A stretch of 64,000 bases of DNA from Thalia democratica. Its lineage: Eukaryota. Shown piece by piece: positions 3,001 through 59,200 of this stretch. The stretch is from contig OZ241834.1 in the NCBI GenBank assembly GCA_965202585.1, positions 682,001 through 746,000 on the forward strand, in the 5' to 3' direction. The position numbers were made by a program, and so were the translations under genes. The first letter of the stretch is position 1, and every line of letters starts with the position of its first letter. The notes beneath the pieces were generated by a model, which saw only the letters and a program-made list of their open reading frames with translations, did no database searches and had not been told where the DNA came from.

Positions 3001-3491
3001 CATACTTGTTTGGAATGCCCAAACCTCCTTTTTCGACGAATACGTTGATTAGGATGTTGGGACAATCATGCGGTAGGCGAAGCTATTTCCGCACATACTG
3101 GTTTGAAATTCCCAAACCTCCTTTTTCGACGGATACGTTGATTAGGATGTTGAGACAATCATGGGTAGGCGAAGCTATTTCCGCACATACTTGTTTGGAA
3201 TGCCCAAACCTCATTTTTCGACGGATACATTGATTAGGATGTTGGGACAATCATGGGTAGGCGAAGCTATTTCCGCACATACTTGTTTGGAATGCCCAAA
3301 CCTCCTTTTTCGACGGATACGTTGATTAGGATGTTGGGACAATCATGCGGTAGGCGAAGCTATTTCCGCACATACATGTTTGGAATGCCCAAACCTCATT
3401 TTTCGACGAATACGTTGATTAGGATGTTGGGACAATCATGGGTAGGCGAAGCTATTTCCGCACATACTTGTTTGGAATGCCCAAACCTCAT
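1..3491. repeat. Satellite array 1: ~38 tandem 92/93-bp units derived from the thumb-coding region of a non-LTR RT (RT sense on minus strand); runs off the window start
   Basis: GATTAGGATG recurs at 1, 93, 185 and onward. Units carry CATGGGTAGG (92 bp) or CATGCGGTAGG (93 bp). The reverse complement of the 93-bp unit translates to NKYVRK*LRLPHDCPNILINVFVEKGGLGIP. Confidence 0.97.
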
Positions 3492-11443: not shown

Positions 11444-12097
11444 ATTTTTATCTATCTGATAGCTTTTTTGTGTCAAATCTAAATTTAACTACTTAATATG
11501 TTAAAATTGTTAAAAATTCCAGATTTTTTCTAAGTTATTTTTTTGCCTAAATTGTCAAATTTCAGAATTTTCCAGGTTTCTAGGTAAATTGGCAACTCTG
11601 TATAGTTTTATTTCTTAGTCTAACTTAGTGACTTTTCAAAAAAAAAAAAAAACTGGAAATATCATGAGGTGATAGTTAATAATAAATAACATAGATTTTT
11701 ACAAACCATTTATGATCCCAAATAACATATATGTCAGGTTATAAAATAGTGAGAGGGATTTAAATCGTCTATGATCTATGTAATTGTTAAATAAGGAAAT
11801 ATTTACTTGAAAGTAGGAGTCATAAGCACTTGATTTTTTTTTCTATCTGTTACATAAATAAAAGAAACTTTTTTTTTCAAGTTTCACCTCAGGGTCAAAT
11901 AAATAATAGCAAGCTAAAATTAGTAAAATAGCAAGAAAAAAAGTAAAAATCTTATGACAGCCCAAAATTTTAAAATCGCCCTCTTTTCGCCCTCTTACTA
12001 GTTATCGCCCACCCTTTCGCCCCCTTACTAATTATCGCCCCCCAAATTACTAAAATCGCCCCCAGGGGGGCGATATCGCCCACTTTGGGAAACCCTG

Positions 12098-35520: not shown

Positions 35521-36975
35521 AACATTTAGAGAAGAATAATTTTAAATAACATTTTTATCAACGTTTTTAAATAATTTAGAGAAGAATAATTTTATAAAGC
35601 TAATGAAAATAGCAACGAGTGATGTACAGTTTAATTTCAATAATACAATTTACAGTCAGATAGACGGCGTAGCCATGGGGTCACCTTTGGGTCCTACTCT
35701 AGCGAATATTTTTATCGGATATTTAGAATCCAAAATTGCTGACGACTTATCTTCACAGGTTGTCTACATAAGATACGTCGACGATTGTTTGGTTATATCC
35801 AAAACAGAAAGTTAAAACGAAGCTGTTTTTCAAAAATTAAACTCTTTACATGAAAAGATTTCTTTTACTAGAGAAGTAGAAGAGAACAACCAGCTGCCAT
35901 TTCTGGATATATTAATAATAAAAGATAAAACAAGCTTCTTAACGAATGTCTATAGAAAAACAACTTTCACTGGGCAATACTTACACTACCAATCGTTTTG
36001 TAGTAAGAAACGAAAAGTAAACCTAATCAAAAACTGTACCATAGAGCATACAGAATCTGTTCGAAAGAATTACTTCATTCAGAGGTTAAGAGAATAAAAA
36101 AAATTTTAATAAAAAATGGTTACCCACCAGATTTGATTAAGAAGGTGATAAAATCACACCACAATAACATAAATCAACCTAGGCTATTTGGACCGGAGAA
36201 GTTCCCAGCAATATTAAAACTACCTTATATTGGAGAAAAATCACGAGTATTTGAGAGCAAACTAAAAGACTTAACAAAAACATCTTACAATCAAGTGCTT
36301 CCAAGAGTTATATTTCTTTCAAAATCTTTATTAAAAGTGCAGTTGAAGGACCCGATACCAGACCAAGACAAAAGTTGTGTAGTATACAAGTTTAATTACT
36401 CTTGCGAAAAGAGCTATATCGGTCAGACCTCTAGGCACTTAAAAACCAGGATAAAAGAACATCTACCTGCTTGTGTATTAAAATTCATCGAACATAAACC
36501 TGAAATTAAGACAATAGCAACAAAAAACGCAGCAAAAAGATCTTCAGTTGCAGAACATCTAACAAATAATAGAGATTGTGCTAGGAAATATGACATATCC
36601 AGATTTGGAATAATCAATCATTGCAATAGTGTGTTTGATCTCGTGAAGTTGGAGGCTATCTCTATATTTTTGGAGAAACCAGAACTGTCTAAACAGAAGG
36701 AATTTGATTAAAAAGTGTTACTTATTATTTATTTAGTTAAATTATCTATTTTTTATCCGTTAGTAGTATTTGAGTTTAATTATTTATTACTTTACACTGA
36801 TTATTTATTGTGCTTAACACTTTGTTAGTTTTAACTTTTTGTGTTTTTGTTTAAAAACTTATTCACAGTTTTAAATTTGTTCTACTATTAAGTTCTGACG
36901 AAAAGTAGTGTAATACGTATAAACTATCACAGAAAAAACTTGAGAGAGTGTTTTATTTATTTGTTTTTGCATTAA
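35521..36975 (+). mobile_element. Penelope-like retroelement, 5'-truncated; right arm only
   Basis: Interrupts sequence that is contiguous in the left arm (~24364). Carries Penelope RT and GIY-YIG remnants and a T-rich 3' region. Possible degenerate TSD ATTAAATTTT(T)A. Confidence 0.9.
35576..36711 (+). pseudogene. Penelope RT + GIY-YIG endonuclease ORF remnant (in-frame stop at 35813, frameshifts near 36030-36130)
   Basis: YSQIDGVAMGSPLGPTLANIF, YIRYVDDCL, NNQLPFLDI, VYRKTTFTGQYL and VVYKFNYSCEKSYIGQTSRHLKTRIKEH are diagnostic Penelope RT and GIY-YIG motifs. Confidence 0.95.
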
Positions 36976-38238
36976 ATTAAATTTTTATGTAATACTAAAT
37001 ATAAAGTTGAGAGCATAAACTATCTTAAGATAATAAGGTAAGTAGGAACCTTCTTTTTATTTATTATTTGATAGAAACAACTTTCCAATAGTATCTGAAT
37101 TTGATAAAGCTTTTTTTTTTAACAAGTTTTAACAAGTCCTCTCAAAAAATATTTGATGAAGATGATAAAGACAAAAATTTGAAATATATTTATAAAAACT
37201 GTCTATAAATGCAAAATTTATTTATAAGCATTGATGAAAAAATTCATTCTCTTAATTTTTTGAAAGATGAAATAATAAGGACACCGAAAATGTTCTATAT
37301 ATTTGTTAAGCGCACTATTTATTCTTTCAAGTAATTTTAAATTGTTCTTTGGCTATATACTTTGCGCCAAAACAATGGAAATATCAAACATTATACAAAA
37401 AAGGTAGCAAGTACAACCTTTGAAATTTCGAACTAATCTTTTTGATGAGTAGGTAAGTTTTTTAAGTCACGTGGTAATTTTTTAAACCTTATTTTACCTA
37501 AACAATTTGGTTTTCTTTCTAATAAGTGTACTGAAGTAATTTATACAGAAATCCAAAAATGTTCGACTCTGTCTTTCATTTCAAATTAACAAAAACATTT
37601 TTTGAGTGCAAAATTTATATTAGTCTAGTTAGTTTAAAGGGTTTCTTCATATTATAACCCAAAAAGTAGTAATTAATAACACAATTTAAACCTTTACCGG
37701 TCAAATGGAGTGCCTCAAGAAAGGTATTTAATTGTATGATTGATGTAGCTTCTGAAGTCGATGTAAGCAGCTATACTAATCTCTACTAACGACACAAAAA
37801 AGTTTTAACGATACTAATATAGCCTTAAAAAATTCTTAGATAAAGTTTACCTTTGGCTAAAAGAAGAAAATTTAGCTTAAACTTCTAGTGGCGTAGTAGA
37901 TGTCATGTTTTCAAAAAATACCTTTATCTCTACTTTTGACTTAAAAATAAACTTATCTTTAAAATAAGTGTTTAAAGATTTTTGAATTTTTTTGCTGAAA
38001 ATTTAAAATAGAACCACCATACTAATTAGCTTTACCGATTCATATCGGCTATATGTTTTAAAGTTTTAAATACACGGATATAACATCTTAAAAAAGTTGT
38101 ACTTCTTATAAACTCATCATAAGTTGGAATACAACACACCAGTCTGGTCTCCATACTTTAAAAGATATTATTTATATAGAAATGTTTAAAATTTATATAC
38201 CAGAATAATCTTCAACCGCTGCAATGTTTCTTATACGC

Positions 38239-38533
38239 CAGGGGTCGGCAGCCTTATGTAACTCGCCGGCCAACTTTCTTAAAAAAAAAATTTCTAACGG
38301 GCCGCATTTATTAAAAAAAGGTTCTAGTAATCAGGAAAAATACATTATTTAAGATCAAAAATATAACAATTTAAGCAATATTAGAGGACTAATAAAAAGT
38401 ATTTATTGAAGTAAGAGCCTTACTGTAAGTTTTTATTACAAAATATTTAATTTTTATGTTTTAAAAATGTATGTTTCAGGTTAACTAGGAGCCGCAGATT
38501 TTGACTTTGAAGTCCGCAGTTTACCGACCTCTG
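38239..38533. mobile_element. hAT MITE, right-arm mirror copy of 22728-23058
   Basis: TIR CAGGGGTCGGCA / TACCGACCTCTG. TSD TTATACGC (38231-38238, 38534-38541). Confidence 0.9.
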
Positions 38534-41149
38534 TTATACGCTTTACCTTGATAGACTACAAACACATAATTTAAATTTTAAGAACATAGAAAACTTAACC
38601 TCATTACTTTTTTTAAACTAGGTTAAGGTTAAACTACAATTAATTTACTATCCATTTCTGAATCTTATAAAATAATTTATATTCTTAAGTGTAAAAACAA
38701 GAACATTATATTTATATATCATTTCAATAATGATGTTCGGCATAATTCTTTGTTTTATCGTTCAGTTAAAAATTGGAACAAACTTTAAAATAATTTAGTG
38801 TCTTGCAAAAAAGTTAAACATTTTCGATTAAAGTTAAAAACTTAGGTTTGCTGTTCTTTTATCAACAATTGATTTAATCCATAGTTCGATTATATTAGCA
38901 GCGCTTTTCCTCTATGATTAATAAAACCCTTTACAATGTGTTCGTTAAGATTTACTAGGCCTGTCTATTCTTAATGTGCTTGGGGCTTATAATTTCATTG
39001 CTAGTCAATGCATTTAATCTTTTAATGTTTTATTGAAATATTTTGTATATCTTGATATTGTACGTTTGTAATTGTATCGATTATGCCTTGGCAATGCAAT
39101 AAATGATAATAAGATCTTAATTCAACATATTTCATAGAATTGCAACTTAAATACATACATTATTAATGATGACAAATAACTATATTATAACCGGACTAAA
39201 GCACTATATATTTTTTTGTAAACAATTAAATATTTTGAAGGTTGATATCAAAAATTAATAAGTAGGTTGATGCCAAAGTCTTTGTTTGTTTTCACTTAAT
39301 TGGATTTTAAATGATTGAAGTCTGGTAAGAAGTTGATGCTAATAGAGGAAAAAGTAATACTTTAACGAATGATGAAAAGTCCCCCATAAGGGTCTTCTTT
39401 ACAACGTTGTTTCAACTATTTTAGTACAACCCTAATATCAATGCGACACACTTGGTAATTTTTACTCAACTGGCACTTATGCTAATAATCTTAATCAATC
39501 AAATTGACAACAAACGTTTTAGATTTCGTTAACTTTCGAATATTCTAAATGCTTAAATATATTGCTATGAACCTAAAATTCTTAAACTACACGCGTACTG
39601 ATCAGTATGTACTTAAAGTAAAGTGTAAAACACTAACAACGAATTAATGTACTCCTAAATAATAACAACTAATATACCATTATTTTTCTTTGTACATAAA
39701 GAATACTGTTTAAATTTATTATTATTATATATTCCAGTTAACTTGTATCGCAATGATCTGTATTAGTTTACGCTTTAATTTATATTTTGAATAGTTTATT
39801 CTTAAATATGCTTTTAATTATATTTTAGACAACCCGCTTACTAAAAAAGTCGCTTGATAAACTATTTTCAATAATTATTTATATATATATAATCAGTATG
39901 TATTAGTGCTTATTGTATTAATCAGTATGTAAGCACTTAAAGCTTAAAATTGTAATTAATTTAGTTTTACTTTTATTGAAACATTATGAACCCAAATTAA
40001 ATTTTAAATAGTAAATATGAAGATATTGGTAGTATAAAATGAAGATATAAAGTGATTTACCAAAAATAATTTTGCACATATTAATTAATAAATTTTCAAT
40101 CTTTTAACTTCAATTTTTAATTAGAATAATACATTACATAGTATATAGTAATAATACCAATAAATTAAATAGAATTTAACATTATATTTTAACAAATTTA
40201 TGGTTTCAGAAAACTTTAAATTGCTTAAACAAAATGCTCTTTGCAGCACATAAAACAAATAAATTATCCCAAATAATATTTACATTCATCTGTTCCAACA
40301 GGTAATTGAAACTGAACTTTACAGCAGGTGTGCCAACCTTTTGCTTATATGTGAAAAGAATGAAAATTGTTGAACTAAGTAACAATCATATGAAATTTAT
40401 GTCTTAATAAAATTACTTTGTAATATAAGAAGTAGTTTGTAGTTTAAACTTTTATTAAAGTTATTAATTGCTGAATATTATAGAAATTATGTCAATAAAG
40501 CATGATTATCTTACTAAGGGCTTAAAAGACAAATCATTAGTTATACAAGTGTTACCAGATTGTTAAATAATAAAGTAATAAATAATAAGATTGTCTCCTT
40601 GGTTATTTAATCAACAAACTTTTATCTAAAAAAGTATGTATGTATGAAATAAACAAATTTAAAGATACATCAATGGTATATTTATAATAATCAAAAATAG
40701 ACGACTTTTTATAGAAAAACACGCTAAACTATTTTTAAAATATTACTAAGCTTTACCACCATAAGTCTATACAATTTAACAAACGTCAAAAAAGTTTATT
40801 TGAACTTGTGTAAAAAGATCTTTGAAACTTAGGATACAAAGAACTATTAACATTGAAAGTAATAATTAAACAAATTGCTGTAGATCATTAAAAAAGGAGA
40901 GATTTTTCAGTAAACGTTTCCATTTTTTCTTAATTTTAAACTATCATTAATAATTTATGATATTAAAGTAAACTTATTTTGTAGTTACTTTAAAAATATA
41001 AACTATTTTTTAAATTAAAAAATCACGTAACTTAATTTTAACATCATAAAATGTGACTAAAGTATTTAGAAATATTGTGTGTGATTTATAAATGATCTCC
41101 ATCGAGATAGTTTTCAAAAATGATTCGTCAAAGTTTAAACATCATTTCA

Positions 41150-41935
41150 TGATTCTTTAAAGAGACAAAGCACCTGCCCAGTCTCCCATGAACTCCACAT
41201 TCGTGGAAGATGTTGTTTCCATTTGTTCACGAGTGAGATGTCATATTTTCCACTTTGCCGTCGTGAGCCTTGTTGAGGTCTTTGATGAAATCAGCAAAGA
41301 AATCTGTCCAATCTGCATATAGTGTCATGCTTGGAATGTGTAAACCTCATTTTGAAACGGATACATTGATTAAGATATTAGGACAATCAGGCGAAGCCAT
41401 CTCCGCACACTCTTGTTTAAAAGGCGGTCAAAATTTCCCATCACGTTTTGCTGGTCTCCGTGAAGTTGAGTTGATTTTTGTCGTGAGGATCTCCCTGATT
41501 TCAGCGGGCAGCGACTGATTTTTTTGAGTTTACTCTACATGTCTTCCAAACTGATTTTTTGTCTCCTGCAGTGTTAATAGAGCTCCAAGATATTTATACT
41601 CGACATGCATTCCATCTGAGGGATTTCAACACCATTAATTATGTAAGATTCTGCCATGTTGTCAATGGTGTATTTGCTTATGGGAAAACAAAGTGGCATA
41701 TTGCGCTTTTTACTGTGTTTATTTGTAGGCTTAACCTCAGTAATTTTTTTAACTAAGATTTCGATTTTTTGGTTGATTTGTGAGTTGTTATTAGCAAAAA
41801 TCACGAGCGCGTCAGCAAATTTATGGCCAACTTTTGTTTTTCCAAAGGAAACTTCATCTTGATTCGTGATAGAGTTCAGGGCTTCGTCTAGCATCAGGTT
41901 GAATAAAAGTGGGGAGAGGGGATCTCCCCAAAAAA
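41150..41935 (-). pseudogene. Non-LTR (R2-like) RT relic, motif 4 to thumb
   Basis: GDPLSPLLFNLMLDEALNSI (motif 4), HKFADALVIF (motif 5, normally FADD), EYKYLG after a frameshift (motif 7), then NKSVRRWLRL/DCPNILINVSVSK*GLHIPS (thumb). Confidence 0.9.
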
Positions 41936-41994
41936 CTTAATCCGGCTAGTTAACAGAATCAAACCGAAAACTATCTAAACTGGAGCATGTACAA

Positions 41995-42095
41995 TAACTA
42001 AAACTGGAAAGAGGGGTAATACAAGGCGACCTCTCTCACTGTTCAACATGGTACTGGACGAAGCACTCAGTAGCATCAAGGACCAAGGAGAGGTA
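41995..42095 (+). pseudogene. Short paralogous RT motif-4 fragment in the opposite orientation
   Basis: KLERGVIQGD, then LFNMVLDEALSSIKDQGEV after a small deletion; homologous to 41850-41930 on the other strand. Confidence 0.8.
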
Positions 42096-42195
42096 CTTTA
42101 ATTTAGTAATTAATGGTTGGCTCTCGTCTTTTATTTCTGGATAACTTTTTTCTAATATATTAGATTTTTTCAAGTCTTTATTTGTTCGTTACAAC

Positions 42196-42275
42196 TGGGT
42201 GTGTGTTGTGCATGTGGAGTCATAAAGAGCGGTTGTTGCTAAATATTTGTTAAATGTGGTTTGACATAATTCGCA
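42196..42275 (-). pseudogene. CCHH zinc-finger remnant of the R2 N-terminal type
   Basis: CELCQTT, then FSNNRSL*LHMHNTHP across an 11-nt insertion. This gives C-x2-C-x3-F-x5-L-x2-H-x4-H-P spacing. Confidence 0.7.
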
Positions 42276-42874
42276 TAATTTGAGTTATGTCGGATGCCGA
42301 GGCGCGATAATCTAACATTCAGCTTTTATGTTCAGGGCTTTCTGTGAGCTGAAGACTTGTTCGTTTCATAATTCGGAATCGGTAAATATCGGAATTTAGC
42401 TGTTACTATTCCAAAAATCAAACTTATTAAATAAAACAGAGAAAAAGAAAGTTTTCATAATTTTTTTTTATCTTTCCTTTTTATAAGAAACCTGAATGAT
42501 CAAAAAAAAATTCATATTTTGTTTAGAATATAGTTTTTTTGTTCAATTTTTATATATGCAAATATAAAATATAACAAAATGTGAGCTAAAAAAACAATAA
42601 TCAGACTAACTGAGATGCAAACCGAAAACTTAATGAAATACAAAGTAAAAAAAAATAATGCTTTGATAATTTTTTTAATTGCAATTTGGGTTTGTCTGAT
42701 AGAATCTATGAAGTTTTTTTTTGAGTCAAAGGGTGTTGATATGTGTTTAATTTTTTTAGTTTTTCTTCTTTTTACTATTATTATTTTTATTTATTGTAGG
42801 ACTGTATAATTGTTTTGTTTCGTTGACTTTAGGGAATTCTGTTCAAGTCTCTTACATTTTCTTTCAAACATTTT

Positions 42875-43093
42875 TCTGTCTAGCACAGCTTGTTAGTTTC
42901 CTTCAATTCCTACGTGGGCTTTTACGTGGGAGAATTTTAATTTTAAATTCTGTTTAATATTCGCATTAGTATGTCTCGGTTTATTACTTAAGTTTTGTTT
43001 TTGGTTAGCCAGCACCTTTTTATATTCTGGTATTTTTTCTATCATAGTTATTGAATATTGGTTATCGGATTTAATGCGAATGTGTTTAAGATT
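42875..43093 (-). pseudogene. Ribonuclease H domain remnant
   Basis: Single frame NLKHIRIKSDNQYSITMIEKI...LKLKFSHVKAHVGIEGN*QA. Matches the RNase HI motifs I.I.SDSQY and HVKAH.G..GNE.AD. Confidence 0.85.
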
Positions 43094-43094
43094 A

Positions 43095-44215
43095 ACAAGT
43101 CATAGACAAACTGACTAAAGAAGGTATCTCAAAGATGGATACTAAGTTGTTGATGAAATGCTTCCTAGATGAAAGAAAAATGCCTCTTGAAAGGTTTAAC
43201 ATGGTTCTGATCCCAAAGCATGAGAGGACAAATCATCCGAACTACTTTATTTTGTCGATAGGGCTAAATTTATTCATTGATATGTATCTATGACAAAAAG
43301 AGCTCTGGAATGCTGAAAGTTATCCCAAATAAAAACAGATAGCTTGCAGCGTGGATTTAAAGCTAAGGAAGGAATCTTGGCGAGGGCAGCGAAGAAAGTA
43401 ATAAAAGTATGTCAGTATCATAAATTAAAAATATATCTGAAGTTCGACAGTGAGAATCACCTGAGGCTGACGGAGGTGCTCAACTGGCACCAACTCAACA
43501 CTCAACTGAAAGATAATTACAAACATGTACAACAGTTCATGTTTGAGAACTTGGTTAAAGAATTTCAATAGGATCTTGTAAGACATAGTGAAGAAAGTAA
43601 TCAACGAAGGAAGAAGTAAATAGCATGTTTAGACCTGAAGAAAGAATTCGACTCGGTTAATCACCTAAAGCTGGTTGAACTCGTCTGGAATACTAAGAAA
43701 AATAAAGGTTCAGACAACGAATTACTAACATGTATAGAGGTAACAGCTTATTCCTGAAAACAGGAGAACAAATCCCGATAGAAAAAGCTACGAAAAAATC
43801 AAATGTCGCCTACGCTCTTCAACCTTACCCTTAACGAAGGCAGAAAATTATCAATATCATGGATAGATCTGAAGAAATCAATCGACTCGGTCAATAATCA
43901 TAAACTGATTGAAGTCCTCAACTCGACTGGCATTCCAAGAAAGATAACTCGACAAATTACTAACATGTATGGTGGAAACAGCTTATATTTGAGAACTGAT
44001 AAAAAAATTCCAATTAAACGTGGGGTACTCCAAGGCGATGTAAATAACAATGATCAATCTTAAATGAAGCGCTTAGAGGTTTCACGGAAGGAATTAAATC
44101 AAAACTACTTTCGCAGTGAACACGGACTTTGGAAGAACTTTGGAAGGTTATAAACAGGGAACCGAAAAACCGATCCACCTGAACATCTGGAAAACCTCGA
44201 GTTCACCACCAACAA
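43095..44215 (+). pseudogene. Non-LTR RT relic, motifs 1-6, scrambled, with a duplicated motif 3-4 segment
   Basis: NMVLIPK, LQRGFKAKEG, IACLDLKKEFDSVNHLKL...ITNMYRGNSLFLKTGEQIPIEK, SPTLFNLTLNE, ISWIDLKKSIDSVNNHKLIEVLNSTGIPRKITRQITNMYGG...IPIKRGVLQGD, NEALRG, IHLNIWKT. Confidence 0.9.
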
Positions 44216-44299
44216 TCATTATAAGTTATTAAAGATCGTGAAGAACAAGTTTATACTTATTTTTTGTAACTTTATTAAAACCGGTTGAAACTATCAAAG

Positions 44300-47200
44300 G
44301 TAAATTTGATAAAATGAATTACTTATGAGTAAATGGAGTACCTTCGTAAAGTGTCGATAGTGTAAACCATCTCAAGATGGTCGAAGTATTGAATTCGCGT
44401 GGAGTATGCAAAATGACTCGTATAATAGCGCATATGAGGTATAGGTGCAATTCTGTCACGCAAAGAACGAATAGCAATAGAACGGGGAAAGAGTTCCAAA
44501 AGAAACATGGATTGTAACAGGAACCAAAATTGACCAACTTTAAACCAGTTGACCCACTCAAGGGTAAGAGTATATTTGAGAAAATGAATTACTTATGAGT
44601 AAATGGAGTACCTTCGTAAAGTGTTCGATAGTGTCAACCATCTCAAGATAGTCGAGGTGTTGAATTCGCGTGGGGTACGAAAAATGACTCGTATAATAGC
44701 GCAAATGTACTGAGGTAACGGTGCATTTCTGCAAATAACAGATAGCAATAAAAGGCGGAAAGAGCTCCAATATAAACATGGATTGTAACAGGAAGCAAAA
44801 ATTGACCAACTTTAAACCAGTTGACCCACTCAAGGGTAAGAGTATATTTGAGAAAATGAATTACTTATGAGTAAATGGAGTACCTTCGTAAAACGTTCGA
44901 TAGTGTCAACCATCTCAAGATAGTCGAGGTGTTGTATTCGGGTGGGGTACGAAAAATGACTCGTATAATAGCGCAAATGTACCGAGGTAAAAGTGCATTT
45001 CTGCAAAGAACAGATAGCAATAAAAGGCGGAAAGAGCTCAAATATAAACATGGATTGTAACAGGAAGCAAAGTTGACCAACTTTAAACCAGTTGACCCAC
45101 TCAAGGGTAAGAGTAAATTTGAGAAAATGAATTACTTATGAGTAAATAAAGTACCTTCGTAAAGTGTTCGATAGTGTCAACCATCTCAAGATAGTCGAGG
45201 TGTTGAATTCGCGTGGGGTACGAAAAATGACTCGTATAATAGCGCAAATGTACCGAGGTAACGGTGCATTTCTGCAAATAACAGATAGCAATAAAAGGCG
45301 GAAAGAGCTCCAATATAAACATGGATTGTAACAGGAGGCAAAATTGACCAACTTTAAACCAGTTGACCCACTCAAGGGTAAGAGTAAATTTGATAAAATC
45401 AATTACTTATGAGTAAATGGAGTACCTTCGTAAAGTGTTCGATAGTGTCAACCATCTCAAGATAGTCGAGGTGTTGAATTTGCGTGGGGTACGAAAAATG
45501 ACTCGTATAATAGCGCAAATGTACCGAGGTAACGGTGCATTTCTGCAAAGAACAGATAGCAATAAAAGGCGGAAAGAGCTCAAATATAAACATGAATTGT
45601 AATAGGAAGCAAAAATTGACCAACTTTAAACCAATTGACCCACTCAAGGGTAAGAGTAAATTTGAGAAAATGAATTACTTATGAGTAAATGGAGTACCTT
45701 CGTAAAGTGTTCGATAGTGTCAACCATCTCAAGATAGTCGAAGTATTGAATTCGCGTTGAGTAGGCAAAATGACTCGTATAATAGCGCATATGAGGTATA
45801 GGTGCAATTCTGTCACGAAAAGAACGAATAGCAATAGAACGGGGAAAGAGTTCCAAAAGAAACATGGATTGTAACAGGAGGCAAAATTGACCAACTTTAA
45901 ACCAGTTGACCCACTCAAGGGTAAGAGTAAATTTGAGAAAATGAATTACTTATGAATAAATGGAGTACCTTCGTAAAGAGTTCGATAGTGTCAATCATCT
46001 TAAGATAGTCGAGGTGTTGAATTCGCGTGGGGTACGAAAAATGACTCGTATAATAGCGCAAATGTACTGAGGTAACGGTGCATTTCTGCAAAGAACAGAT
46101 AGCAATAAAAGGCGGAAAGAGCTCCAATATAAACATGGATTGTAACAATAAGCAAAGTTGACCAACTTTAAACTAGTTGACCCACTCAAGGGTAAGAGTA
46201 AATTTGAGAAAATGAATTACTTATGAGTAAATGGAGTACCTTCGTAAAGTGTTCGATAGTGTCAATCATCTCAAGATAGTCGAGGTGTTGAATTCGCGTG
46301 GGGTACGAAAAATGACTCGTATAATAGCGTATATGAGGTATAGGTGCAATTCTGTCACGAAAAGAACGAATAGCAATAGAACGGGGAAAGAGTTCCAAAA
46401 GAAACATGGATTGTAACAGGAGGCAAAATTGACCAACTTTAAACCAGTTGACCCACTCAAGGGTAAGAGTAAATTTGAGAAAATGAATTACTTATGAATA
46501 AATGGAGTACCTTCGTAAAGAGTTCGATAGTGTCAATCATCTCAAGAGAGTCGAGGTGTTGAATTCGCGTGGGGTACGAAAAATGACTCGTATAATAGCG
46601 CAAATGTACCGAGGTAACGGTGCATTTCTGCAAAGAACAGATAGCAATAAAAGGCGGAAAGAGTTCGAATATAAACATGGATTGTAACAATAAGCAAAGT
46701 TGACCAACTTTAAACCAGTTGACCCACTCAAGGGTAAGAGTAAATTTGAGAAAATGAATTACTTATGAATAAATGGAGTACCTTCGTAAAGTGTTTGATA
46801 GTGTCAACCATCTCAAGATAGTCGAGGTGTTGAATTCGCGTGGGGTACGAAAAATGATTCGTATAATAGCGCAAATGTACCGAGGTAACGGTGCATTTCT
46901 GCAAAGAACAGATAGCAATAAAAGGCGGAATAGCTCCAATATAAACATAGATTCTAACAATAAGCAAAGTTGACCAACTTTAAACCAGTTGACCCACTCA
47001 AGGGTAAGAGTAAATTTGAGAAAATGAACTACTGATGAGTAAATGGAGTACCTTCGTAAAGTGTTCGATAGTGTCAACCATCTCAAGATAGTCGAGGTGT
47101 TGAATTCGCGTGGGGTACGAAAAATGACTCGTATAATAGCGCAAATGTACCGAGGTAACGGTGCATTTCTGCAAAGAACAGATAGCAATAAAAGGCGGAA

Positions 47201-50200
47201 AGAGCTCCAATATAAACATGGATTGTAACAATAAGCAAAGTTGACCAACTTTAAACCAGTTGACCAACTCAAGGGTAAGAGTAAATTTGATAAAATGAAT
47301 TACTTATGAGTAAATGGAGTACCTTCGTAAAGTGTTCGATAGTGTAAACCATCTCAAGTTAGTCGAGGTGTTGAATTCGCGTTGGGTACGAAAAATGACT
47401 CGTATAATAGCGCAAATGTACCGAGGTAACGGTGCATTTCTGCAAATAACAGATAGCAATAAAAGGCGGAAAGAGCTCCAATATAAACATGGATTGTAAC
47501 AATAAGCAAAGTTGACCAACTTTAAACCAGTTGACCCACTCAAGGGTAAGAGTAAATTTGAGAAAATGAATTACTTATGAGTAAATGGAGTACCTTCGTA
47601 AAGTGTTCGATAGTGTCAACCATCTCAAGATAGTCGAGGTGTTGAATTCGCGTGGGGTCCCAAGCAAAATAACTCGAATAATAGCGCAAACGTACCAAGG
47701 TAACGGAGCATTTTTGCAAATAATAGATAGCAATAAAAGGCGGAAAGAGCTCAAATATAAACATGAATTGTAACAGGAGGCAAAGTTGACCAACTTTAAA
47801 CCAGTTGACCCACTCAAGGGTTAGAGTAAATTTGAGAAAATGAATTACTTATGAGTAAATGGAGTACCTTCGTAAAACGTTCGATAGTGTCAACCATCTC
47901 AAGATAGTCGAGGTGTTGAATTCGCGTGGGGTACGAAAAATGACTCGTATAATAGCGCAAATGTACCGAGGTAACGGTGCATTTCTGCAAAGAACAGATA
48001 GCAATAAAAGGCGGAAAGAGCTCAAATATAAACATGAATTGTAACAGGAGGCAAAGTTGACCAACTTTAAACCAGTTGACCCACTCAAGGGTAAGAGTAA
48101 ATTTGAGAAAATGAATTACTTATGAGTAAATGGAGTACCTTCGTAAAACGTTCGATAGTGTCAACCATCTCAAGATAGTCGAGGTGTTGAATTCGCGTGG
48201 GGTACGAAAAATGACTCGTATAATAGCGCAAATGTACCGAGGTAACGGTGCATTTCTGCAAAGAACAGATAGCAATAAAAGGCGGAAAGAGCTCAAATAT
48301 AAACATGAATTGTAACAGGAGGCAAAGTTGACCAACTTTAAACCAGTTGACCCACTCAAGGGTAAGAGTAAATTTGAGAAAATGAATTACTTATGAGTAA
48401 ATGGAGTACCTTCGTAAAGTGTTCGATAGTGTCAACCATCTCAAAATAGTCGAGGTGTTGAATTCGCGTGGGGTACGAAAAATGACTCATATAATAGCGC
48501 AAATGTACCGAGGTAACGGTGCATTTCTGCAATTAACAGATAGCAATAAAAGGCGGAAAGAGCTCAAATATAAACATGAATTGTAACAGGAGGCAAAGTT
48601 GACCAACTTTAAACCAGTTGACCCACTCAAGGGTTAGAGTAAATTTGAGAAAATGAATTACTTATGAGTAAATGGAGTACCTTCGTAAAACGTTCGATAG
48701 TGTCAACCATCTCAAGATAGTCGAGGTGTTGAATTCGCGTGGGGTACGAAAAATGACTCATATAATAGCGCAAATGTACCGAGGTAACGGTGCATTTCTG
48801 CAAATAACAGATAGCAATAAAAGGCGGAAAGAGCTCCAATATAAACATGGATTGTAACAATAAGCAAAGTTGACCAACTTTAAACCAGTTGACCCACTCA
48901 AGGGTAAGAGTAAATTTGATAAAATGAATTACTTATGAGTAAATGGAGTACCTTCGTAAAGTGTTCGATAGTGTCAACCATCTCAAGATAGTCGAGGTGT
49001 TGAATTCGCGTGGGATACGAAAAATGACTCGTATAATAGCGCAAATGTACCGAGGTAACGGTGCATTTCTGCAAATAACAGATAGCAATAAAAGGCGGAA
49101 AGACCTCAAATATAAACATGGATTGTAACAATAAGCAAAGTTGACCAACTTTAAACCAGTTGACCCACTCAAGGGTAAGAGTAAATTTGATAAAATGAAT
49201 TACTTATGAGTAAATGGAGTACCTTCGTAAAGTGTTCGATAGTGTCAATCATCTCAAGATAGTCGAGGTGTTGAATTCGCGTGGGGTACGAAAAATGACT
49301 CGTATAATAGCGCAAATGTACCGAGGTAACGGTGCATTTCTGCAAAGAGCAGATAGCAATAAAAGGCGGAAAGAGCTCCAATATAAACATGGATTGTAAC
49401 AGGAGGCAAAGTTGACCAACTTTAAACCAGTTGACCCACTCAAGGGTAAGAGTAAATTTGAGAAAATGAATTACTTATGAGTAAATGGAGTACCTTCGTA
49501 AAGTGTTCGATAGTGTCAACCATCTCAAGATAGTCGAAGTATTGAATTGGCGTTGAGTAGGCAAAATGACTCGTATAATAGCGCATATGAGGTATAGGTG
49601 CAATTCTGTCACAAAAAGAACGAATAGCAATTGAACGGGGAAAGAGTTCCAAAAGAAACATGGATTGTAACAGGAGGCAAAATTGACCAACTTTAAACCA
49701 GTTGACCCACTCAAGGGTAAGAGTAAATTTGAGAAAATGAATTACTTATGAGTAAATGGAGTACCTTCGTAAAGTGTTCGATAGTGTCAACCATCTCAAG
49801 AGAGTCGAGGTGTTGTATTCGCGTGGGGTACGAAAAATGACTCGTATAATAGCGCAAATGTACCGAGGTAACGGTGCATTTCTGCAAAGAACAGATAGCA
49901 ATAAAAGGCGGAAAGAGCTCAAATATAAACATGGATTGTAACAGGAGGCAAAGTTGACCAACTTTAAACCAGTTGACCCACTCAAGGGTAAGAGTAAATT
50001 TGAGAAAATGAATTACTTATGAGTAAATGGAGTACCTTCGTAAAGTGTTCGATAGTGTCAACCATTTCAAGATAGTCGAGGTGTTGTATTCGCGTGGGGT
50101 ACGAAAAATGACTCGTATAATAGCGCAAATGTACCGAGGTAACAGTGCATTTCTGCAAAGAACAGATAGCAATAAAAGGCGGAAAGAGCTCAAATATAAA

Positions 50201-53200
50201 CATGGATTGTAACAGGAAGCAAAAGTTGACCAACTTTAAACCAGTTGACCCACTCAAGGGTAAGAGTAAATTTGAGAAAATGAATTACTTATGAGTAAAT
50301 GAAGTACCTTCGTAAAACGTTCGATAGTGTCAACCATCTCAAGATAGTCGAGGTGTTGAATTCGCGTGGGGTACGAAAAATAACTCGTATAATAGCGCAA
50401 ATGTACCGAGGTAACGGTGCATTTCTGCAAAGAACAGATAGCAATAAAAGGCGGAAACAGCTTAAATATAAACATGGATTGTAACAGGAGGCAAAGTTGA
50501 CCAACTTTAAACCAGTTGACCCACTCAAGGGTAAGAGTAAATTTGAGAAAATGAATTACTTATGAGTAAATGGAGTACCTTCGTAAAGTGTTCGATAGTG
50601 TCAACCATCTCAAGAGAGTCGAGGTGTTGTATTCGCGTGGGGTACGAAAAATGACTCGTATAATAGCGCAAATGTACCGAGGTAACGGTGCATTTCTGCA
50701 AAGAACAGATAGCAATAAAAGGCGGAAAGAGCTCAAATATAAACATGGATTGTAACAGGAGGCAAAGTTGACCAACTTTAAACCAGTTGACCCACTCAAG
50801 GGTAAGAGTAAATTTGAGAAAATGAATTACTTATGAGTAAATGGAGTACCTTCGTAAAGTGTTCGATAGTGTCAACCATTTCAAGATAGTCGAGGTGTTG
50901 TATTCGCGTGGGGTACGAAAAATGACTCGTATAATAGCGCAAATGTACCGAGGTAACAGTGCATTTCTGCAAAGAACAGATAGCAATAAAAGGCGGAAAG
51001 AGCTCAAATATAAACATGGATTGTAACAGGAAGCAAAAGTTGACCAACTTTAAACCAGTTGACCCACTCAAGGGTAAGAGTAAATTTGAGAAAATGAATT
51101 ACTTATGAGTAAATGAAGTACCTTCGTAAAACGTTCGATAGTGTCAACCATCTCAAGATAGTCGAGGTGTTGAATTCGCGTGGGGTACGAAAAATAACTC
51201 GTATAATAGCGCAAATGTACCGAGGTAACAGTGCATTTCTGCAAAGAACAGATAGCAATAAAAGGCGGAAAGAGCTTAAATATAAACATGGATTGTAACA
51301 GGAGGCAAAGTTGACCAACTTTAAACCAGTTGACCCACTCAAGGGTAAGAGTAAATTTGAGAAAATGAATTACTTATGAGTATATGAAGTACCTTCGTAA
51401 AGTGTTCGATACTATCAACCATTTCAAGATAGTCGAGGTGTTGGATTCGCTTGGGGTACGAAAAATGACTCGTATAATAGCGCAAATGTACCGAGGTAAC
51501 GGTGCATTTCTGCAAAGAACAGATAGCAATAAAAGGCGGAAAGAGCTCAAATATAAACATGGATTGTAACAGGAGGCAAAGTTGACCAACTTTAAACCAG
51601 TTGACCCACTCAGCGGTAAGAGTAAATTTGAGAAAATGAATTACTTATGAGTATATGGAGTACCTTCGTAAAGTGTTCGATACTGTCAACCATCTCAAGA
51701 TAGTCGAGGTGTTGTATTCGCGTGGGATACGATAAATGACTCGTATAATAGCGCAAATGTACCGAGGTAACGGTGCATTTCTGCAAAGAACAGATAGCAA
51801 TAAAAGGCGGAAAGAGCTCCAATATAAACATGGATTGTAACAGGAAGCAAAAGTTGACCAACTTTAAACCAGTTGACCCACTCAAGGGTAAGAGTAAATT
51901 TGAGAAAATGAATTACTTATGAGTATATGGAGTACCTTCGTAAAGTGTTCGATAGTGTCAACCATCTCAAGATAGTCGAGGTGTTGAATTCGCGTGGGGT
52001 ACGAAAAATGACTCGTATAATAACGCAAATGTACCGAGGTAACGGTGCATTTCTGCAAATAACAGATAGCAATAAAAGGCGGAAAGAGCTCAAATATAAA
52101 CATGGATTGTAACAGGAAGCAAAATTGACCAACTTTAAACCAGTTGACCCAATAAAGGGTAAGAGTAAATTTGAGAAAATGAACTACTTATGAGTAAATG
52201 GAGTACCTTCGTAAAGTGTTCGATACTGTCAACCATCTCAAGATAGTCGAGGTGTTGAATTCGCGTTGGGTACGAAAAATGACTCGTACAATAGCGCAAA
52301 TGTACCGAGGTAACGATGCATTTCTGCAAAGAACAGATAGCAATAAAAGGCGGAAAGAACTCCAATATAAACATGGATTGTAACAATAAGCAAAGTTGAC
52401 CAACTTTAAACCAGTTGACCCACTCAAGGGTAAGAGTAAATTTGAGAAAATGAATTACTTATGAGCAAATGGAGTACCTTCGTAAAGTGTTCGATAGTGT
52501 CAACCATCTCAAGATAGTCGAGGTGTTGAATTTGCGTGGGGTACGAAAAATGACTCGTATAATAGCGCAAATGTACCGAGGTAACGGTGCATTTTTGCAA
52601 AGAACAGATAGCAATAAAAGGCGGAAAGAGCTCCAATATAAACATGGATTGTAACAATAAGCAAAGTTGACCAACTTTAAACCAGTTGACCCACTCAAGG
52701 GTAAGAGTAAATTTGAGAAAATGAATTACTTATGAGTAAATGGAGTACCTTCGTAAAGTGTTCGATAGTGTCAACCATCTCAAGATAGTCGAGGTGTTGA
52801 ATTCGCGTGGGGTACGAAAAATGACTCGTACAATAGCGCAAATGTACCGAGGTAACGGTGCATTTTTGCAAAGAACAGATAGCAATAAAAGGCGGAAAGA
52901 GCTCCAATATAAACATGGATTGTAACAATAAGCAAAGTTGACCAACTTTAAACCAGTTGACCCACTCAAGGGTAAGAGTAAATTTGAGAAAATGAATTAC
53001 TTATGAGTAAATGGAGTACCTTCGTAAAGTGTTCGATAGTGTCAACCATCTCAAGATAGTCGAGGTGTTGAATTCGCGTGGGGTACGAAAAATGACTCGT
53101 ACAATAGCGCAAATGTACCGAGGTAACGGTGCATTTCTGCAAAGAACAGATAGCAATAAAAAGCGGAAAGAGCTCCAATATAAACATAGATTGTAACAAT

Positions 53201-56200
53201 AAGCAAAGTTGACCAACTTTAAACCAGTTGACCCACTCAAGGGTAAGAGTAAATTTGAGAAAATGAAATACTTATGAGTAAATGGAGTACCTTCGTAAAG
53301 TGTTCGATAGTGTCAACCATCTCAAGATAGTCGAGGTGTTGAATTCGCGTGGGGTACGAAAAATAACTTGTATAATAGCGCAAATGTACCGAGGTAACGG
53401 TGCATTTCTGCAAATAACAGATAGCAATAAAAGGCGGAAAGAGCTCCAATATAAACATGGATTGTAACAATAAGCAAAGTTGACCAACTTTAAACCAGTT
53501 GACCCACTCAAGGGTAAGAGTAAATTTGATAAAATGAAATACTTATGAGTAAATGGAGTACCTTCGTAAAGTGTTCGATAGTGTCAACCATCTCAAGATA
53601 GTCGAGGTGTTGAATTCGCGTGGGGTACGAAAAATGACTCGTATAATAGCGCAAATGTACCGAGGTAACGGTGCATTTCTGCAAATAACAGATAGCAATA
53701 AAAGGCGGAAAGAGCTCCAATATAAACATGGATTGTAACAATAAGCAAAGTTGACCAACTTTAAACCAGTTGACCCACTCAAGGGTAAGAGTAAATTTGA
53801 GAAAATGAATTACTTATGAGTAAATGGAGTACCTTCGTAAAGTGTTCGATAGTGTCAACCATCTCAAGATAGTCGAGGTGTTGAATTCGCGTGGGGTACG
53901 AAAAATGACTCGTATAATAGCGCAAATGTACCGAGGTAACGGTGCATTTCTTTAAAGAACAGATAGCAATAAAAGGCGAAAGAGCTCCATAGATTGTAAC
54001 AATAAGCAAAATTGACCAACAAAAAACCAATTGACCCACTCAAGGGTAAGAGTAAATTTGAGAAAATGAATTACTTATGAGTAAATTGAATTCCTTCGTA
54101 AAGTGTTCGATAGTGTAAACCATCTCAAGATAGTCGAGGTGTTGAATTCGCGTGGGGTACGAAAAATGACTCGTATAATAGCGCAAATGTACCGAGGTAA
54201 CGGTGCATTTCTGCAAAGAACAGATAGCAATAAAAGGCGGAAAGAGCTCCAATATAAACATGGATTGTAACAATAAGCAAAGTTGACCAACTTTAAACCA
54301 ATTGACCCACTCAAGGGTAAGAGTAAATTTGAGAAAATGAAATACTTATGAGTAAATGGAGTACCTTCGTAAAGTGTTCGATAGTGTCAACCATCTCAAG
54401 ATAGTCGAGGTGTTGAATTCGCGTGGGGTACGAAAAATGACTCGTATAATAGCGCAAATGTACCGAGGTAACGGTGCATTTCTGCAAATAACAGATAGCA
54501 ATAAAAGGCGGAAAGAGCTCCAATATAAACATGGATTGTAACAGGAAGCAAAGTTGACCAACTTTAAACCAGTTGACCCACTCAAGGGTAAGAGTAAATT
54601 TGAGAAAATGAATTACTTATGAGTAAATGGAGTACCTTCGTAAAGTGTTCGATAGTGTCAACCATCTCAAGATAGTCGAGGTGTTAAATTCGCGTGGGGT
54701 ACGAAAAATGACTCGTATAATAGCGCAAATGTACCGAGGTAACGGTGCATTTCTGCAAAGAACAGATTACAATAAAAGGCGGAAAGAGCTCCAATATAAA
54801 CATGGATTGTAACAGGAGGCAAAGTTGACCAACTTTAAACTAGTTGACCCACTCAAGGGTAAGAGTAAATTTGAGAAAATGAAACACTTATGAGTAAATG
54901 GAGTACCTTCGTAAAGTGTTCGATAGTGTCAACCATCTCAAGATAGTCGAGGTGTTGAATTCGCGTGGGGTACGAAAAATGACTCGTACAATAGCGCAAA
55001 TGTACCGAGGTAACGGTGCATTTCTGCAAAGAACAGATAGCAATAAAAGGCGGAAAGAGCTCCAATATAAACATAGATTGTAACAATAAGCAAAGTTGAC
55101 CAACTTTAAACCAGTTGACCAATTTAAGGGTAAGAGTAAATTTGAGAAAATGAATTACTTATGAGTAAATGGAGTACCTTCGTAAAACGTTCGATAGTGT
55201 CAACCATCTCAAGATAGTCGAGGTGTTGAATTCGCGTGGGGTACGAAAAATGAGTATAATAGCGCATATGTACAGAGGTAACGGTGCATTTCTGCAAAGA
55301 ACAGATAACAATAAAAGGCGGAAAGAGCTCCAATATAAACATGGATTGTAACAATAAGCAAAGTTGACCAACTTTAAACCAGTTGACCAACTCAAGGGTA
55401 AGAGTAAATTTGAGAAAATGAATTACTATGAGTAAATGGAGTACCTTCGTAAAGTGTTCGATAGTGTCAACCATCTCAAGATAGTCGAGGTGTTGAATTC
55501 GCGTGGGGTACGAAAAATGACTCGTATAATAGCGTATATGAGGTATAGGTGCAATTCTGTCACGAAAAGAACGAATAGCAATAGAACGGGGAAAGAGTTC
55601 CAAAAGAAACATGGATTGTAACAGGGGGCAAAGTTGACCAACTTTAAACCAGTTGACCCACTCAAGGGTAAGAGTAAATTTGAGAAAATGAATTACTTAT
55701 GAGTAAATGGGGTACCTTCGTAAAGTGTTCGATAGTGTCAACCATCTCAAGATAGTCGAGGTGTTGAATTCGCGTGGGGTACGAAAAATGACTCGTATAA
55801 TAGCGCAAATGTACCGAGGTAACGGTGCATTTCTGCAAATAACAGATAGCAATAAAAGGCGGAAAGAGCTCCAATATAAACATGGATTGTAACAGGAAGC
55901 AAAGTTGACCAACTTTAAACCAGTTGACCCACTCAAGGGTAAGAGTAAATTTGATAAAATGAATTACTTATGAGTAAATGGAGTACCTTCGTAAAGTGTT
56001 CGATAGTGTCAACCATCTCAAGATAGTCGAGGTGTTAAATTCGCGTGGGGTACGAAAAATGACTCGTATAATAGCGCAAATGTACCGAGGTAACGGTGCA
56101 TTTCTGCAAAGAACAGATTACAATAAAAGGCGGAAAGAGCTCCAATATAAACATGGATTGTAACAGGAGGCAAAGTTGACCAACTTTAAACTAGTTGACC

Positions 56201-59200
56201 CACTCAAGGGTAAGAGTAAATTTGAGAAAATGAAACACTTATGAGTAAATGGAGTACCTTCGTAAAGTGTTCGATAGTGTCAACCATCTCAAGATAGTCG
56301 AGGTGTTGAATTCGCGTGGGGTACGAAAAATGACTCGTACAATAGCGCAAATGTACCGAGGTAACGGTGCATTTCTGCAAAGAACAGATAGCAATAAAAG
56401 GCGGAAAGAGCTCCAATATAAACATAGATTGTAACAATAAGCAAAGTTGACCAACTTTAAACCAGTTGACCAATTTAAGGGTAAGAGTAAATTTGAGAAA
56501 ATGAATTACTTATGAGTAAATGGAGTACCTTCGTAAAACGTTCGATAGTGTCAACCATCTCAAGATAGTCGAGGTGTTGAATTCGCGTGGGGTACGAAAA
56601 ATGACTCGTATAATAGCGCATATGTACAGAGGTAACGGTGCATTTCTGCAAAGAACAGATAACAATAAAAGGCGGAAAGAGCTCCAATATAAACATGGAT
56701 TGTAACAATAAGCAAAGTTGACCAACTTTAAACCAGTTGACCAACTCAAGGGTAAGAGTAAATTTGAGAAAATGAATTACTATGAGTAAATGGAGTACCT
56801 TCGTAAAGTGTTCGATAGTGTCAACCATCTCAAGATAGTCGAGGTGTTGAATTCGCGTGGGGTACGAAAAATGACTCGTATAATAGCGTATATGAGGTAT
56901 AGGTGCAATTCTGTCACGAAAAGAACGAATAGCAATAGAACGGGGAAAGAGTTCCAAAAGAAACATGGATTGTAACAGGAGGCAAAGTTGACCAACTTTA
57001 AACCAGTTGACCCACTCAAGGGTAAGAGTAAATTTGAGAAAATGAATTACTTATGAGTAAATGGGGTACCTTCGTAAAGTGTTCGATAGTGTCAACCATC
57101 TCAAGATAGTCGAGGTGTTGAATTCGCGTGGGGTACGAAAAATGACTCGTATAATAGCGCAAATGTACCGAGGTAACGGTGCATTTCTGCAAAGAACAGA
57201 TAGCAATAAAAGGCGGAAAGAGCTCAAATATAAACATGGATTGTAACAGGAAGCAAAGTTGACAAAATTTAAACCAGTTGACCCACTCAAGGGTAAGAGT
57301 AAATTTGATAAAATGAATTACTTATGAGTAAATGGAGTACCTTCGTAAAGTGTTCGATAGTGTCAACCATCTCAAGATAGTCGAGGTGTTGTATTCGCGT
57401 GGGGTATGAAAAATGACTCGTATAATAGCACAAATGTACCGAGGTAACGGTGCATTTCTGCAAAGAACAGATAGCAATAAAAGGCGGAAAGAGCTCCAAT
57501 ATAAACATGGATTGTAACAGGAAGCAAAGTTGTAAAAATTTAAACCAGTTGACCCACTCAAGGGTAAGAGTAAATTTGAGAAAATGAATTACTTATGAGT
57601 AAATGGAGTACCTTCGTAAAGTGTTCGATAGTGTCAACCATCTCAAGATAGTCGAGTTGTTAATTTGCGTGGGGTACGAAAAATGACTCGTATAATAGCG
57701 CATATGTACCGAGGTAACGGTGCATTTCTGCAAAGAACGGATAGCAATAAAAGGCGGAAAGAGCTCCAATATAAACATGGATTGTAACAGAAGGCAAAGT
57801 TGACCAACTTTAAACCAGTTGACCCACTCAAGGGTAAGAGTAAATTTGAGAAAATGAATTACTTATGAGTAAATGGAGTACCTTCGTAAAGTGTTCGATA
57901 GTGTCAACCATCTCAAGATAGTCGAGGTGTTGAATTTGCGTGGGGTACGAAAAATGACTCGTATAATAGCGCAAATGTACCGAGGTAACGGTGCATTTCT
58001 GCAAAGAACAGATAGCAATAAAAGGCGGAAAGAGCTCCAATATAAACATGGATTGTAACAATAAGCAAAGTAGACCAACTTTAAACCAGTTGACCAACTC
58101 AAGGGTAAGAGTAAATTTGATAAAATGAATTACTTATGAGTAAATGCAGTACCTTCGTAAAGTGTTCGATAGTGTCAACCATCTCAAGATAGTCGAGGTG
58201 TTGAATTCGCGTGGGGTACGAAAAATGACTCGTATAATAGCGCAAATGTACCGAGGTAACGGTGCATTTCTGCAAAGAACAGATAGCAATAAAAGGCGGA
58301 AAGAGCTCAAATATAAACATGGATTGTAACAGGAAGCAAAGTTGACCAACTTTAAACCAGTTGACCCACTCAAGGGTAAGAGTAAATTTGAGAAAATGAA
58401 TTACTTATGAGTAAATGGAGTACCTTCGTAAAGTGTTCGATAGTGTCAACCATCTCAAGATAGTCGAGGTGTTGAATTCGCGTGGGGTACAAAAAATGAC
58501 TCGAATAATAGCGCAAATGTACCGAGGTAACGGTGCATTTCTGCAAATAACAGATAGCAATAAAAGGCGGAAAGAGCTCCAATATAAACATGGATTGTAA
58601 CAATAAGCAAAGTTGACCAACTTTAAACCAGTTGACCAACTCAAGGGTAAGAGTAAATTTGATAAAATGAATTACTTATGAGTAAATGCAGTACCTTCGT
58701 AAAGTGTTCGATAGTGTCAACCATCTCAAGTTAGTCGAGGTGTTGAATTCGCGTGGGGTACGAAAAATGACTCGTATAATAGCGCAAATGTACCGAGGTA
58801 ACGGTGCATTTCTGCAAAGAACAGATAGCAATAAAAGGCGGAAAGAGCTCCAATATAAACATGGATTGTAACAATAAGCAAAGTTGACCAACTTTAAACC
58901 AATTGACCCACTCAAGGGTAAGAGTAAATTTGAGAAAATGAATTACTTATGAGTAAATGCAGTACCTTCGTAAAGTGTTCGATAGTGTCAACCATCTCAA
59001 GTTAGTCGAGGTGTTGTATTCGCGTGGGGTACGAAAAATGACTCGTATAATAGCGCAAATGTACCGAGGTAACGATGCACTTCTGCAAAGAACAGATAGC
59101 AATAAAAAGTGGAAAGAACTCCAATATAACCATGGATTGTAACAGGAGGCAAAATTGACCAACTTTAAACCAGTTGACCCACTCAAGGGTAAGAGTAAAT

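Follow-up and report, generated by a model that had tools for sequence, protein, structure and literature searches.

The R2 lineage of non-LTR retrotransposons is normally specific to rDNA. Satellites have been traced to the coding regions of LINEs, with PROsat and Pvc20 derived from L1 ORF2 and the chicken HinfI repeat derived from CR1 (review PMC9659126). Copies of transposable elements can also give rise to satellites through tandem duplication and unequal exchange (McGurk and Barbash 2018, PMC5932611). Here we describe an 86-bp segment, lying in the relic of an element, that is the counterpart of the unit of a nearby satellite. We consider it probable that the segment is a non-functional, unamplified unit within a dead copy of an R2-type element, and that the satellite arose in a sister duplicate of that copy.

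The window, a stretch of 64,000 bp (G000:C10:682001-746000) from an 802-Mb, AT-rich animal genome, contains three tandem arrays (Table 1). The array called satellite 1 extends beyond the window. Its whole length spans C10:660548-685489, where 270 units are arranged head-to-tail over 24.9 kb in one continuous BLAST block, and the units are 95% alike. A 23-base pattern that includes TAG has 266 matches in the genome at one mismatch or fewer (265+1), and among the matches listed all lie in C10:660-670k. Satellite 1 appears as a single array in the assembly.

Most units of satellite 1 carry a stop codon. TAG is found in 253 of the 270 units and TGG in one, which is the unit at the array edge, and in 16 units the codon is not read by the pattern. 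The 93-bp form, represented by 72 units, translates as ...VRK*LRLPHDCLNILINVSVEKGGLGIP. In the 92-bp form (197/270 units), a 1-bp deletion inside LPH breaks the frame. The original prediction that the satellite keeps LPH and GGLG is therefore true of the 72 units that hold both motifs in one frame, but not of the 197 units whose frame is broken at LPH. At the RT-upstream edge of the array, a truncated unit abuts the 259-bp satellite and no RT sequence is left. Native element context is available on one side of the array only.

Table 1. Features of the window and of the 28S rRNA locus L055, and mean identities of single-copy counterparts to the units of satellite 1 (positions refer to the window unless L055 is named)
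Feature	Position	Strand	Remark
Satellite 1	1-3491	(-)	92/93-bp units; portion of larger array
258/259-bp satellite	3495-7561 and 12096-17095		
271-bp satellite	44300-64000	(+)	
AT-rich non-R2 flank, common to host copy and three other duplicates	40522-41068	(-)	
Decayed R2-type relic body, RT to truncated reading-frame end	41069-42300	(-)	Family copies align across
Junction of ~0.56-kb deletion, zinc knuckle/endonuclease lost just after unit	41287-41297	(-)	
Satellite-1 unit counterpart, 86 bp, R2 thumb codons, broken frame	41332-41417	(-)	81% identity, RT sequence contiguous upstream
Derived 7-bp deletion site, LPH removed	41389-41390	(-)	Gap at unit positions 29-35
TGG (Trp) codon, where satellite reads TAG	41397-41399	(-)	G at unit position 20 in 10/10 single-copy counterparts
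Open 120-codon RT palm piece (GDPLSPLLFNL ... FADALVIFA)	41577-41936	(-)	RVT_1, R2 PDB matches
Intact R2 ORF	L055 3913-6849	(-)	
LSU rRNA	L055 2112-10000	(-)	
U2	L055 1462-1657	(-)	
U5	L055 1266-1380	(-)	
Array edge unit			Mean identity to 269 units 85.7%
C10:3.457M and C1007			Mean identity to 269 units 85.2%
C9:1.169M			Mean identity to 269 units 84.9%
C10:760k			Mean identity to 269 units 84.2%
C10:7.59M			Mean identity to 269 units 83.0%
C9:737k			Mean identity to 269 units 81.0%
Window relic and C10:3.51M			Mean identity to 269 units 80.5%
C9:692k			Mean identity to 269 units 77.5%

Global alignment of the 86-bp segment to the 92- and 93-bp unit consensus sequences yields 70 identical positions of 86 (81.4%) with one gap of 6-7 bp. 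The score of this alignment is 81, compared with a mean of -35.5 (sd 8.4) and a maximum of 0 for 1000 dinucleotide-preserving shuffles. When the segment is compared with each of the 269 interior units, the identity ranges from 75.6% to 84.9%, with a mean of 80.5%. It has the orientation of the array and is separated by 37.8 kb from the array end inside the window (3489-3491). These data bear out the original prediction that the segment matches the satellite unit end to end in the same orientation and better than shuffled controls (in a periodic sequence, an end-to-end match depends on the phase chosen for the unit). As was also predicted, the segment is 7 bp short, retains TGG but has lost LPH, and resides in native RT context.

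Both flanks of the 86 bp are native, with contiguous RT sequence upstream and post-thumb sequence downstream. The segment had been called single-copy, and outside the array it is indeed the sole match to the unit in a 104-kb stretch made up of the window and 40 kb upstream. This description does not extend to the genome, where there are at least nine counterparts. Two near-identical duplicates of the relic (97.7% and 93.8% within the unit) and six more family copies were found genome-wide. The satellite-1 monomer has ten one-copy counterparts that lie within element sequence, with identities of 77-86%.

Contigs from public sequencing runs are short and confirm the presence of the family without spanning the array junction. 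Two runs from the same organism include contigs with exact pieces of the relic and its paralogs. In a run labelled as a second organism, a 706-bp contig covers positions 41262-41936 with 39 differences and 35 gap positions. One extra T at position 41390, which is the deletion site, is present in some contigs of all three runs.

Judged by its sequence, the relic is what remains, after decay and heavy deletion, of a non-LTR retrotransposon of the R2 type, a group whose members encode a restriction-like endonuclease. The open palm piece matches Pfam RVT_1 with 30.7 bits (E 3.3e-7, cut-off 29.6), and its best matches in the PDB are R2 proteins (9nl2 with E 2.6e-5, then 9nl3 and 9dou). The relic palm is 35% identical (E 8e-16) to an intact R2 borne by the 28S genes of this genome. 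The 86 bp and the satellite unit correspond to approximately 31 codons of the R2 RT thumb (WLRLPHD...GGLGIP), read on the minus strand, in a collinear order of palm, thumb, and endonuclease. In C10:760k, a better-kept family copy, the ORF reads ...FDRLFNKYVRKWLRLPHDCPNILINGYVAKGDL... and aligns to residues 641-690 of the resident intact R2 (…VRNWLKLPNDFPSAMIHAGIRFGGLGIP…) with E 8e-7. The match of this thumb ORF to residues 767-807 of R2Bm is weak (E 1.4 in a search at E <= 10), and the thumb ORF alone has no match in the PDB at the default threshold. For this reason, the thumb assignment relies on the pairwise match to the intact R2 of the genome.

The domains that follow the thumb can also be recognized in C10:760k. 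A 143-codon ORF of this copy contains a CCHC knuckle and a KPD-type endonuclease motif, and matches residues 918-1009 of 9nl2 (E 1.7e-3). The window relic has lost the knuckle/endonuclease region, and the element copy that hosts the array lacks part of it. At the deletion junction (Table 1), the end of the endonuclease domain (DLNKAHDGKV) directly follows the post-thumb sequence of the relic, and the sequence missing there is kept in C10:760k, C9:1.169M, and the array host.

We use the name R2-type, and do not claim a proven 28S-specific R2, because there is no rRNA sequence near the relic or near five of the family copies. Rfam scans revealed no rRNA next to the relic in the window, and none at E <= 0.01 around five better-kept family copies. 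There is also no long open frame among the family copies; the longest frames have 120-171 codons, and every copy is interrupted by stops or deletions. An apparently intact R2 of 978 codons interrupts a 28S rRNA gene on contig C37 (L055, G000:C37:121001-131000), and its protein is 34-39% identical to the relic family, which makes it only distantly related. Genes for U2 and U5 snRNAs are located directly downstream of this 28S gene, and the snRNA genes seem to be linked to the rDNA unit.

Several other features of the family and of the window were observed. The 271-bp satellite translates into an RT motif sequence (KVFDSVNHLKIVEVLNSRGVRKMTRII) with a strong likeness to residues 418-446 of the intact R2, and its array is preceded by diverged, degenerate units (window 43300-44300, plus strand). 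About 40 codons are missing between FDSVN and GDPLSP in the minus-strand relic, approximately the segment carried by the 271-bp satellite. An RNase H-like fragment of about 70 bp (…KFSHVKAHVGIEGN) lies upstream of the relic RT at window positions 42910-42971. In the host copy of the array, such a fragment lies between the thumb and the zinc knuckle (G000:C10:660350-660418), and it is absent from that place in C10:7.59M, C9:1.169M, and C9:692k. Such a distribution suggests a mobile patch or a rearrangement. The family copies L007, L008/L009, and L010 can be aligned for more than 500 bp beyond the R2 stop codon, whereas C10:7.59M diverges about 75 bp past the stop. Several of the seemingly independent family copies may also be DNA-level duplicates, in which case the family would stem from very few insertions.

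The array lies inside an element copy of its own, because native R2 sequence and a relic-like flank adjoin its last unit. At the left end of the array, which is the 3' side in the coding sense, native post-thumb sequence adjoins the last unit and leads into the start of the zinc-knuckle region (MKPFHYQTLLRTRGNLLETPARKNRK). More than 0.8 kb of non-R2 flank is common to this host copy and the relic. The segment C10:659300-660043 is 87% identical to window 40522-41264, and collinear matches to window 36975-39887 and 40042-41264 are present left of the array. We considered whether the 480 bp that separate the shared flank from the array are a foreign insertion. This possibility was rejected because the sequence is mostly native R2 post-thumb and zinc-knuckle sequence that has been lost from the relic lineage, with the exception of one RNase H-like patch of about 80 bp.

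Two further copies of the window 40042-40500 segment are found left of the satellite-1 array, at C10:651605-652073 and C10:655214-655682 (-30395..-29927 and -26786..-26318 in window coordinates). They are spaced 3.6 kb apart, and they point to an additional tandem duplication in the array flank.

The lesions of the host copy and the relic are shared with three other loci, namely C10:3.51M, C9:737k, and C9:692k. In all five loci, the R2 homology ends at one base (window 41068/41069) and is followed by common AT-rich non-R2 DNA. The segments S6 and S7 of this non-R2 flank are found only in these five loci; the flank is 78-89% identical among them and is absent from other family copies. When the open frame in C10:760k, C9:1.169M, C10:7.59M, and C10:3.457M is used as the reference, a 5-bp deletion is common to all five loci. 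A 2-bp insertion is common to the host copy, the relic, C10:3.51M, and C9:737k; at this site, the alignment of C9:692k is unclear. The host copy and C9:692k also have in common a deletion of about 190 bp after the unit, which is smaller than the ~0.56-kb deletion of the relic. On a larger scale, window 37852-44499 is 91.4% identical to C10:3.5 Mb over 6.8 kb and 86-87% identical to C9:731-741k.

Because the frame-breaking indels, the truncation point, and the non-R2 flank are shared, the five loci go back to a single insertion that had already died and been truncated before it was copied at the DNA level (segmental duplication). The relic is a sister duplicate of the array-bearing copy and not the source of the satellite, and the array-bearing copy begins 38 kb upstream. 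The original prediction of a related intact element as the ancestor of both relic and satellite is not supported in that form, since the array flank and the relic share dead-copy lesions, the truncation point, and non-R2 DNA.

Comparison of the copies also reveals which character states are derived. Apart from the relic, only C10:3.51M has the 7-bp gap at unit positions 29-35, and C9:737k has a 14-bp gap in the same place. The satellite and all other copies keep these bases, and outgroup proteins read LPxD there. At unit position 20, all ten single copies, including the array edge unit, have the G of TGG, and A occurs only in the satellite. The proposal that neither sequence is the direct parent of the other is supported, because the relic lineage has a derived 7-bp deletion and substitutions, whereas TAG exists in the satellite only (0/10 counterparts). 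The satellite retains the ancestral GG of GGLG and CpGs that have been lost from the single copies. T at unit positions 36 and 39 is common to the satellite, the relic lineage, and C9:692k, which fits an origin of the satellite inside the five-locus duplicate group. A copy carrying both TAG and LPH, suggested earlier as worth finding, exists trivially in the form of the satellite itself. The informative pair is TGG with LPH, which is present together in five copies (the array edge unit, C10:760k, C10:3.457M, C1007, and C10:7.59M).

In a tree built from an alignment of 93 columns, the relic clade (C9:692k, (C9:737k, (relic, C10:3.51M))) has a support of 95/92. The satellite variants form a central polytomy with near-zero branch length, and a weak branch (78/28) separates the satellite and the relic clade from the other copies. 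AU tests rejected neither a grouping of the satellite with the edge unit nor a grouping of the satellite with the three close relic copies (p 0.17 and 0.18, respectively). Since a tree of 93 columns leaves the deep branching undecided, the flank lesions carry the argument. In its similarity to the satellite, the relic ranks eighth or ninth of ten, and most counterparts are nearer (83-86% vs 80.5%). Apart from common duplicate descent, nothing links the relic to the satellite in particular. The satellite and the relic differ at 16/86 positions, which agrees with a flank divergence of 13% (P = 0.09).

The edge unit of the array keeps TGG and LPHD. Its middle contains four derived bases that otherwise occur only in C10:760k, C10:3.457M, and C1007, and the unit groups with these three copies (98/90), not with the satellite or the relic clade. 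Given the flank divergences, the distance of the edge unit is too small to the C10:760k-type copies and too large to the relic (P = 0.001 in both cases). Its first nine and last bases are satellite-like, and the sequence beyond it is not C10:760k-like; the sequence just past it resembles C9:692k, C9:1.169M, and C10:7.59M. Because of the grouping and the two deviations in distance, birth of the array in situ needs an extra conversion event. The edge unit would have been partly overwritten by a short gene-conversion tract from C10:760k-type copies. A tandem arrangement was also observed at C10:3.4579 Mb (L008 ~2076-2208) and in its C1007 duplicate, where one and a half units are present. There, a partial unit of 52 bp, which has relic-type bases and lacks 6 bp at the LPH site, precedes a full C10:760k-type unit. 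This arrangement may be a proto-repeat or a recombination scar.

The bases of the edge unit could be accommodated if a C10:760k-type copy had been the birthplace of the array and ectopic recombination had later joined the array to the relic-type flank. If this were true, then the relic-type flank would be uninformative on the source of the satellite. The 98/90 grouping and the heavily rearranged state of the region agree with such a history. However, the C10:760k-like tract is limited to the middle of one unit, and the satellite consensus lacks all four derived bases and has the GG of GGLG where that clade has GAT. We consider this history unlikely, also in view of the resemblances of the post-edge sequence, the ~190-bp deletion in common with C9:692k, and the T36/T39 states common to the satellite and the relic group. 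A different possibility is that the relic and the satellite source are separate retrotransposition products of a related intact master that decayed independently. A young element as the source could account for the satellite consensus, which keeps the ancestral-looking LPH and GGLGIP and is central in the tree, and intact R2 is present in the 28S genes of this genome. Nevertheless, independent insertions would not have in common the 2-bp insertion, the 5-bp deletion, the truncation point, and more than 0.8 kb of non-R2 DNA with kilobases of collinear flank. This evidence, together with the low protein identity of the intact R2 (only 34-39%) and the lack of a long open frame in any family copy, makes separate products very unlikely.

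It is scarcely credible that the 86 bp of the relic are the remnant of a collapsed satellite-1 array, or the seed of the array, even though a direct parent-offspring relation would agree with the shared orientation and with the proximity of the two on the chromosome (38 kb). Native RT sequence adjoins the relic upstream and post-thumb sequence downstream, and the relic reads TGG, not TAG. The 7-bp gap and substitutions such as TCCTAATATCTTA are present in 0/270 units, and the gap is also found in duplicates on another contig. Moreover, contigs of the second-organism run cover the relic, and the 1-base insertion at the gap site recurs in some contigs of all three runs.

The preferred reading, in which the satellite arose in a sister duplicate of the dead relic copy, implies an order of events. 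Death and truncation of the element would have come first, followed by DNA duplication and then by amplification in one copy. After the split, two deletions affected the relic lineage, one of 7 bp (LPH) and one of about 0.56 kb that took out the zinc knuckle and the endonuclease. The TAG codon and the 1-bp deletion arose and spread within the array only, presumably by homogenization that did not reach the edge unit.

The first dimer may have been generated by slippage or unequal exchange between imperfect direct repeats, AACA(A/T)G.ATG, that bracket the 93-bp segment, and unequal crossing-over could then have enlarged the array. In native copies, the 93-bp segment starts with AACAAGTA(C/T)G, and the sequence next to it starts with AACATGAATG, AATATGAACG, or AACACGCATG. 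The junctions between array units read AACAAG or AACATG. The bracketing microhomology is short and could be due to chance. It is highly improbable that the first tandem copies were instead produced during insertion, with the R2 reverse transcriptase switching templates between the AACA(A/T)G.ATG repeats, and not by DNA slippage. If this hypothesis is true, then R2-type elements are intrinsically prone to seed satellites, and this property could explain several R2-coding-derived satellites in the genome, including the 271-bp satellite.

The conversion of transposon debris into a satellite is an ordinary, known phenomenon, and this example does not change the knowledge of satellite origins. A shallow search of the literature found no description of a satellite made from the R2 thumb. 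The locus is an unusually complete record, since it includes the array, a host copy with a native edge, unamplified sister duplicates, and distant copies that fix the ancestral states. It demonstrates that the ancestral coding sequence can be better preserved in an array consensus than in any single-copy relic. For annotation, it is a caution that the nearest relic is not the parent, and for teaching, it is a useful example.

In its domain order, which consists of palm, thumb (WLRLPxD...GGLxIP), CCHC knuckle, and restriction-like endonuclease, the relic family resembles the R2 elements of 28S genes (R2Bm, PDB 8gh6/8ibw). Unlike those elements, the relic and five better-kept family copies are not next to rRNA, and the family has no intact copy. 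As in the model of satellite birth from transposable elements (PMC5932611), the substrate is a transposable element and the array would have expanded by recombination. That model involves double insertions of whole elements, whereas here a 93-bp internal segment appears to have been duplicated inside one dead copy. Satellite 1 is similar to PROsat, Pvc20, and the HinfI repeat, in that its monomer is a short internal piece of the RT gene of a non-LTR element, and one-copy counterparts are found in dispersed degenerate copies. It is different from these satellites in its source, which is of the R2-type (endonuclease-bearing) lineage. In contrast to genome-wide LINE satellites, satellite 1 is a single 25-kb locus with the native element at one edge.
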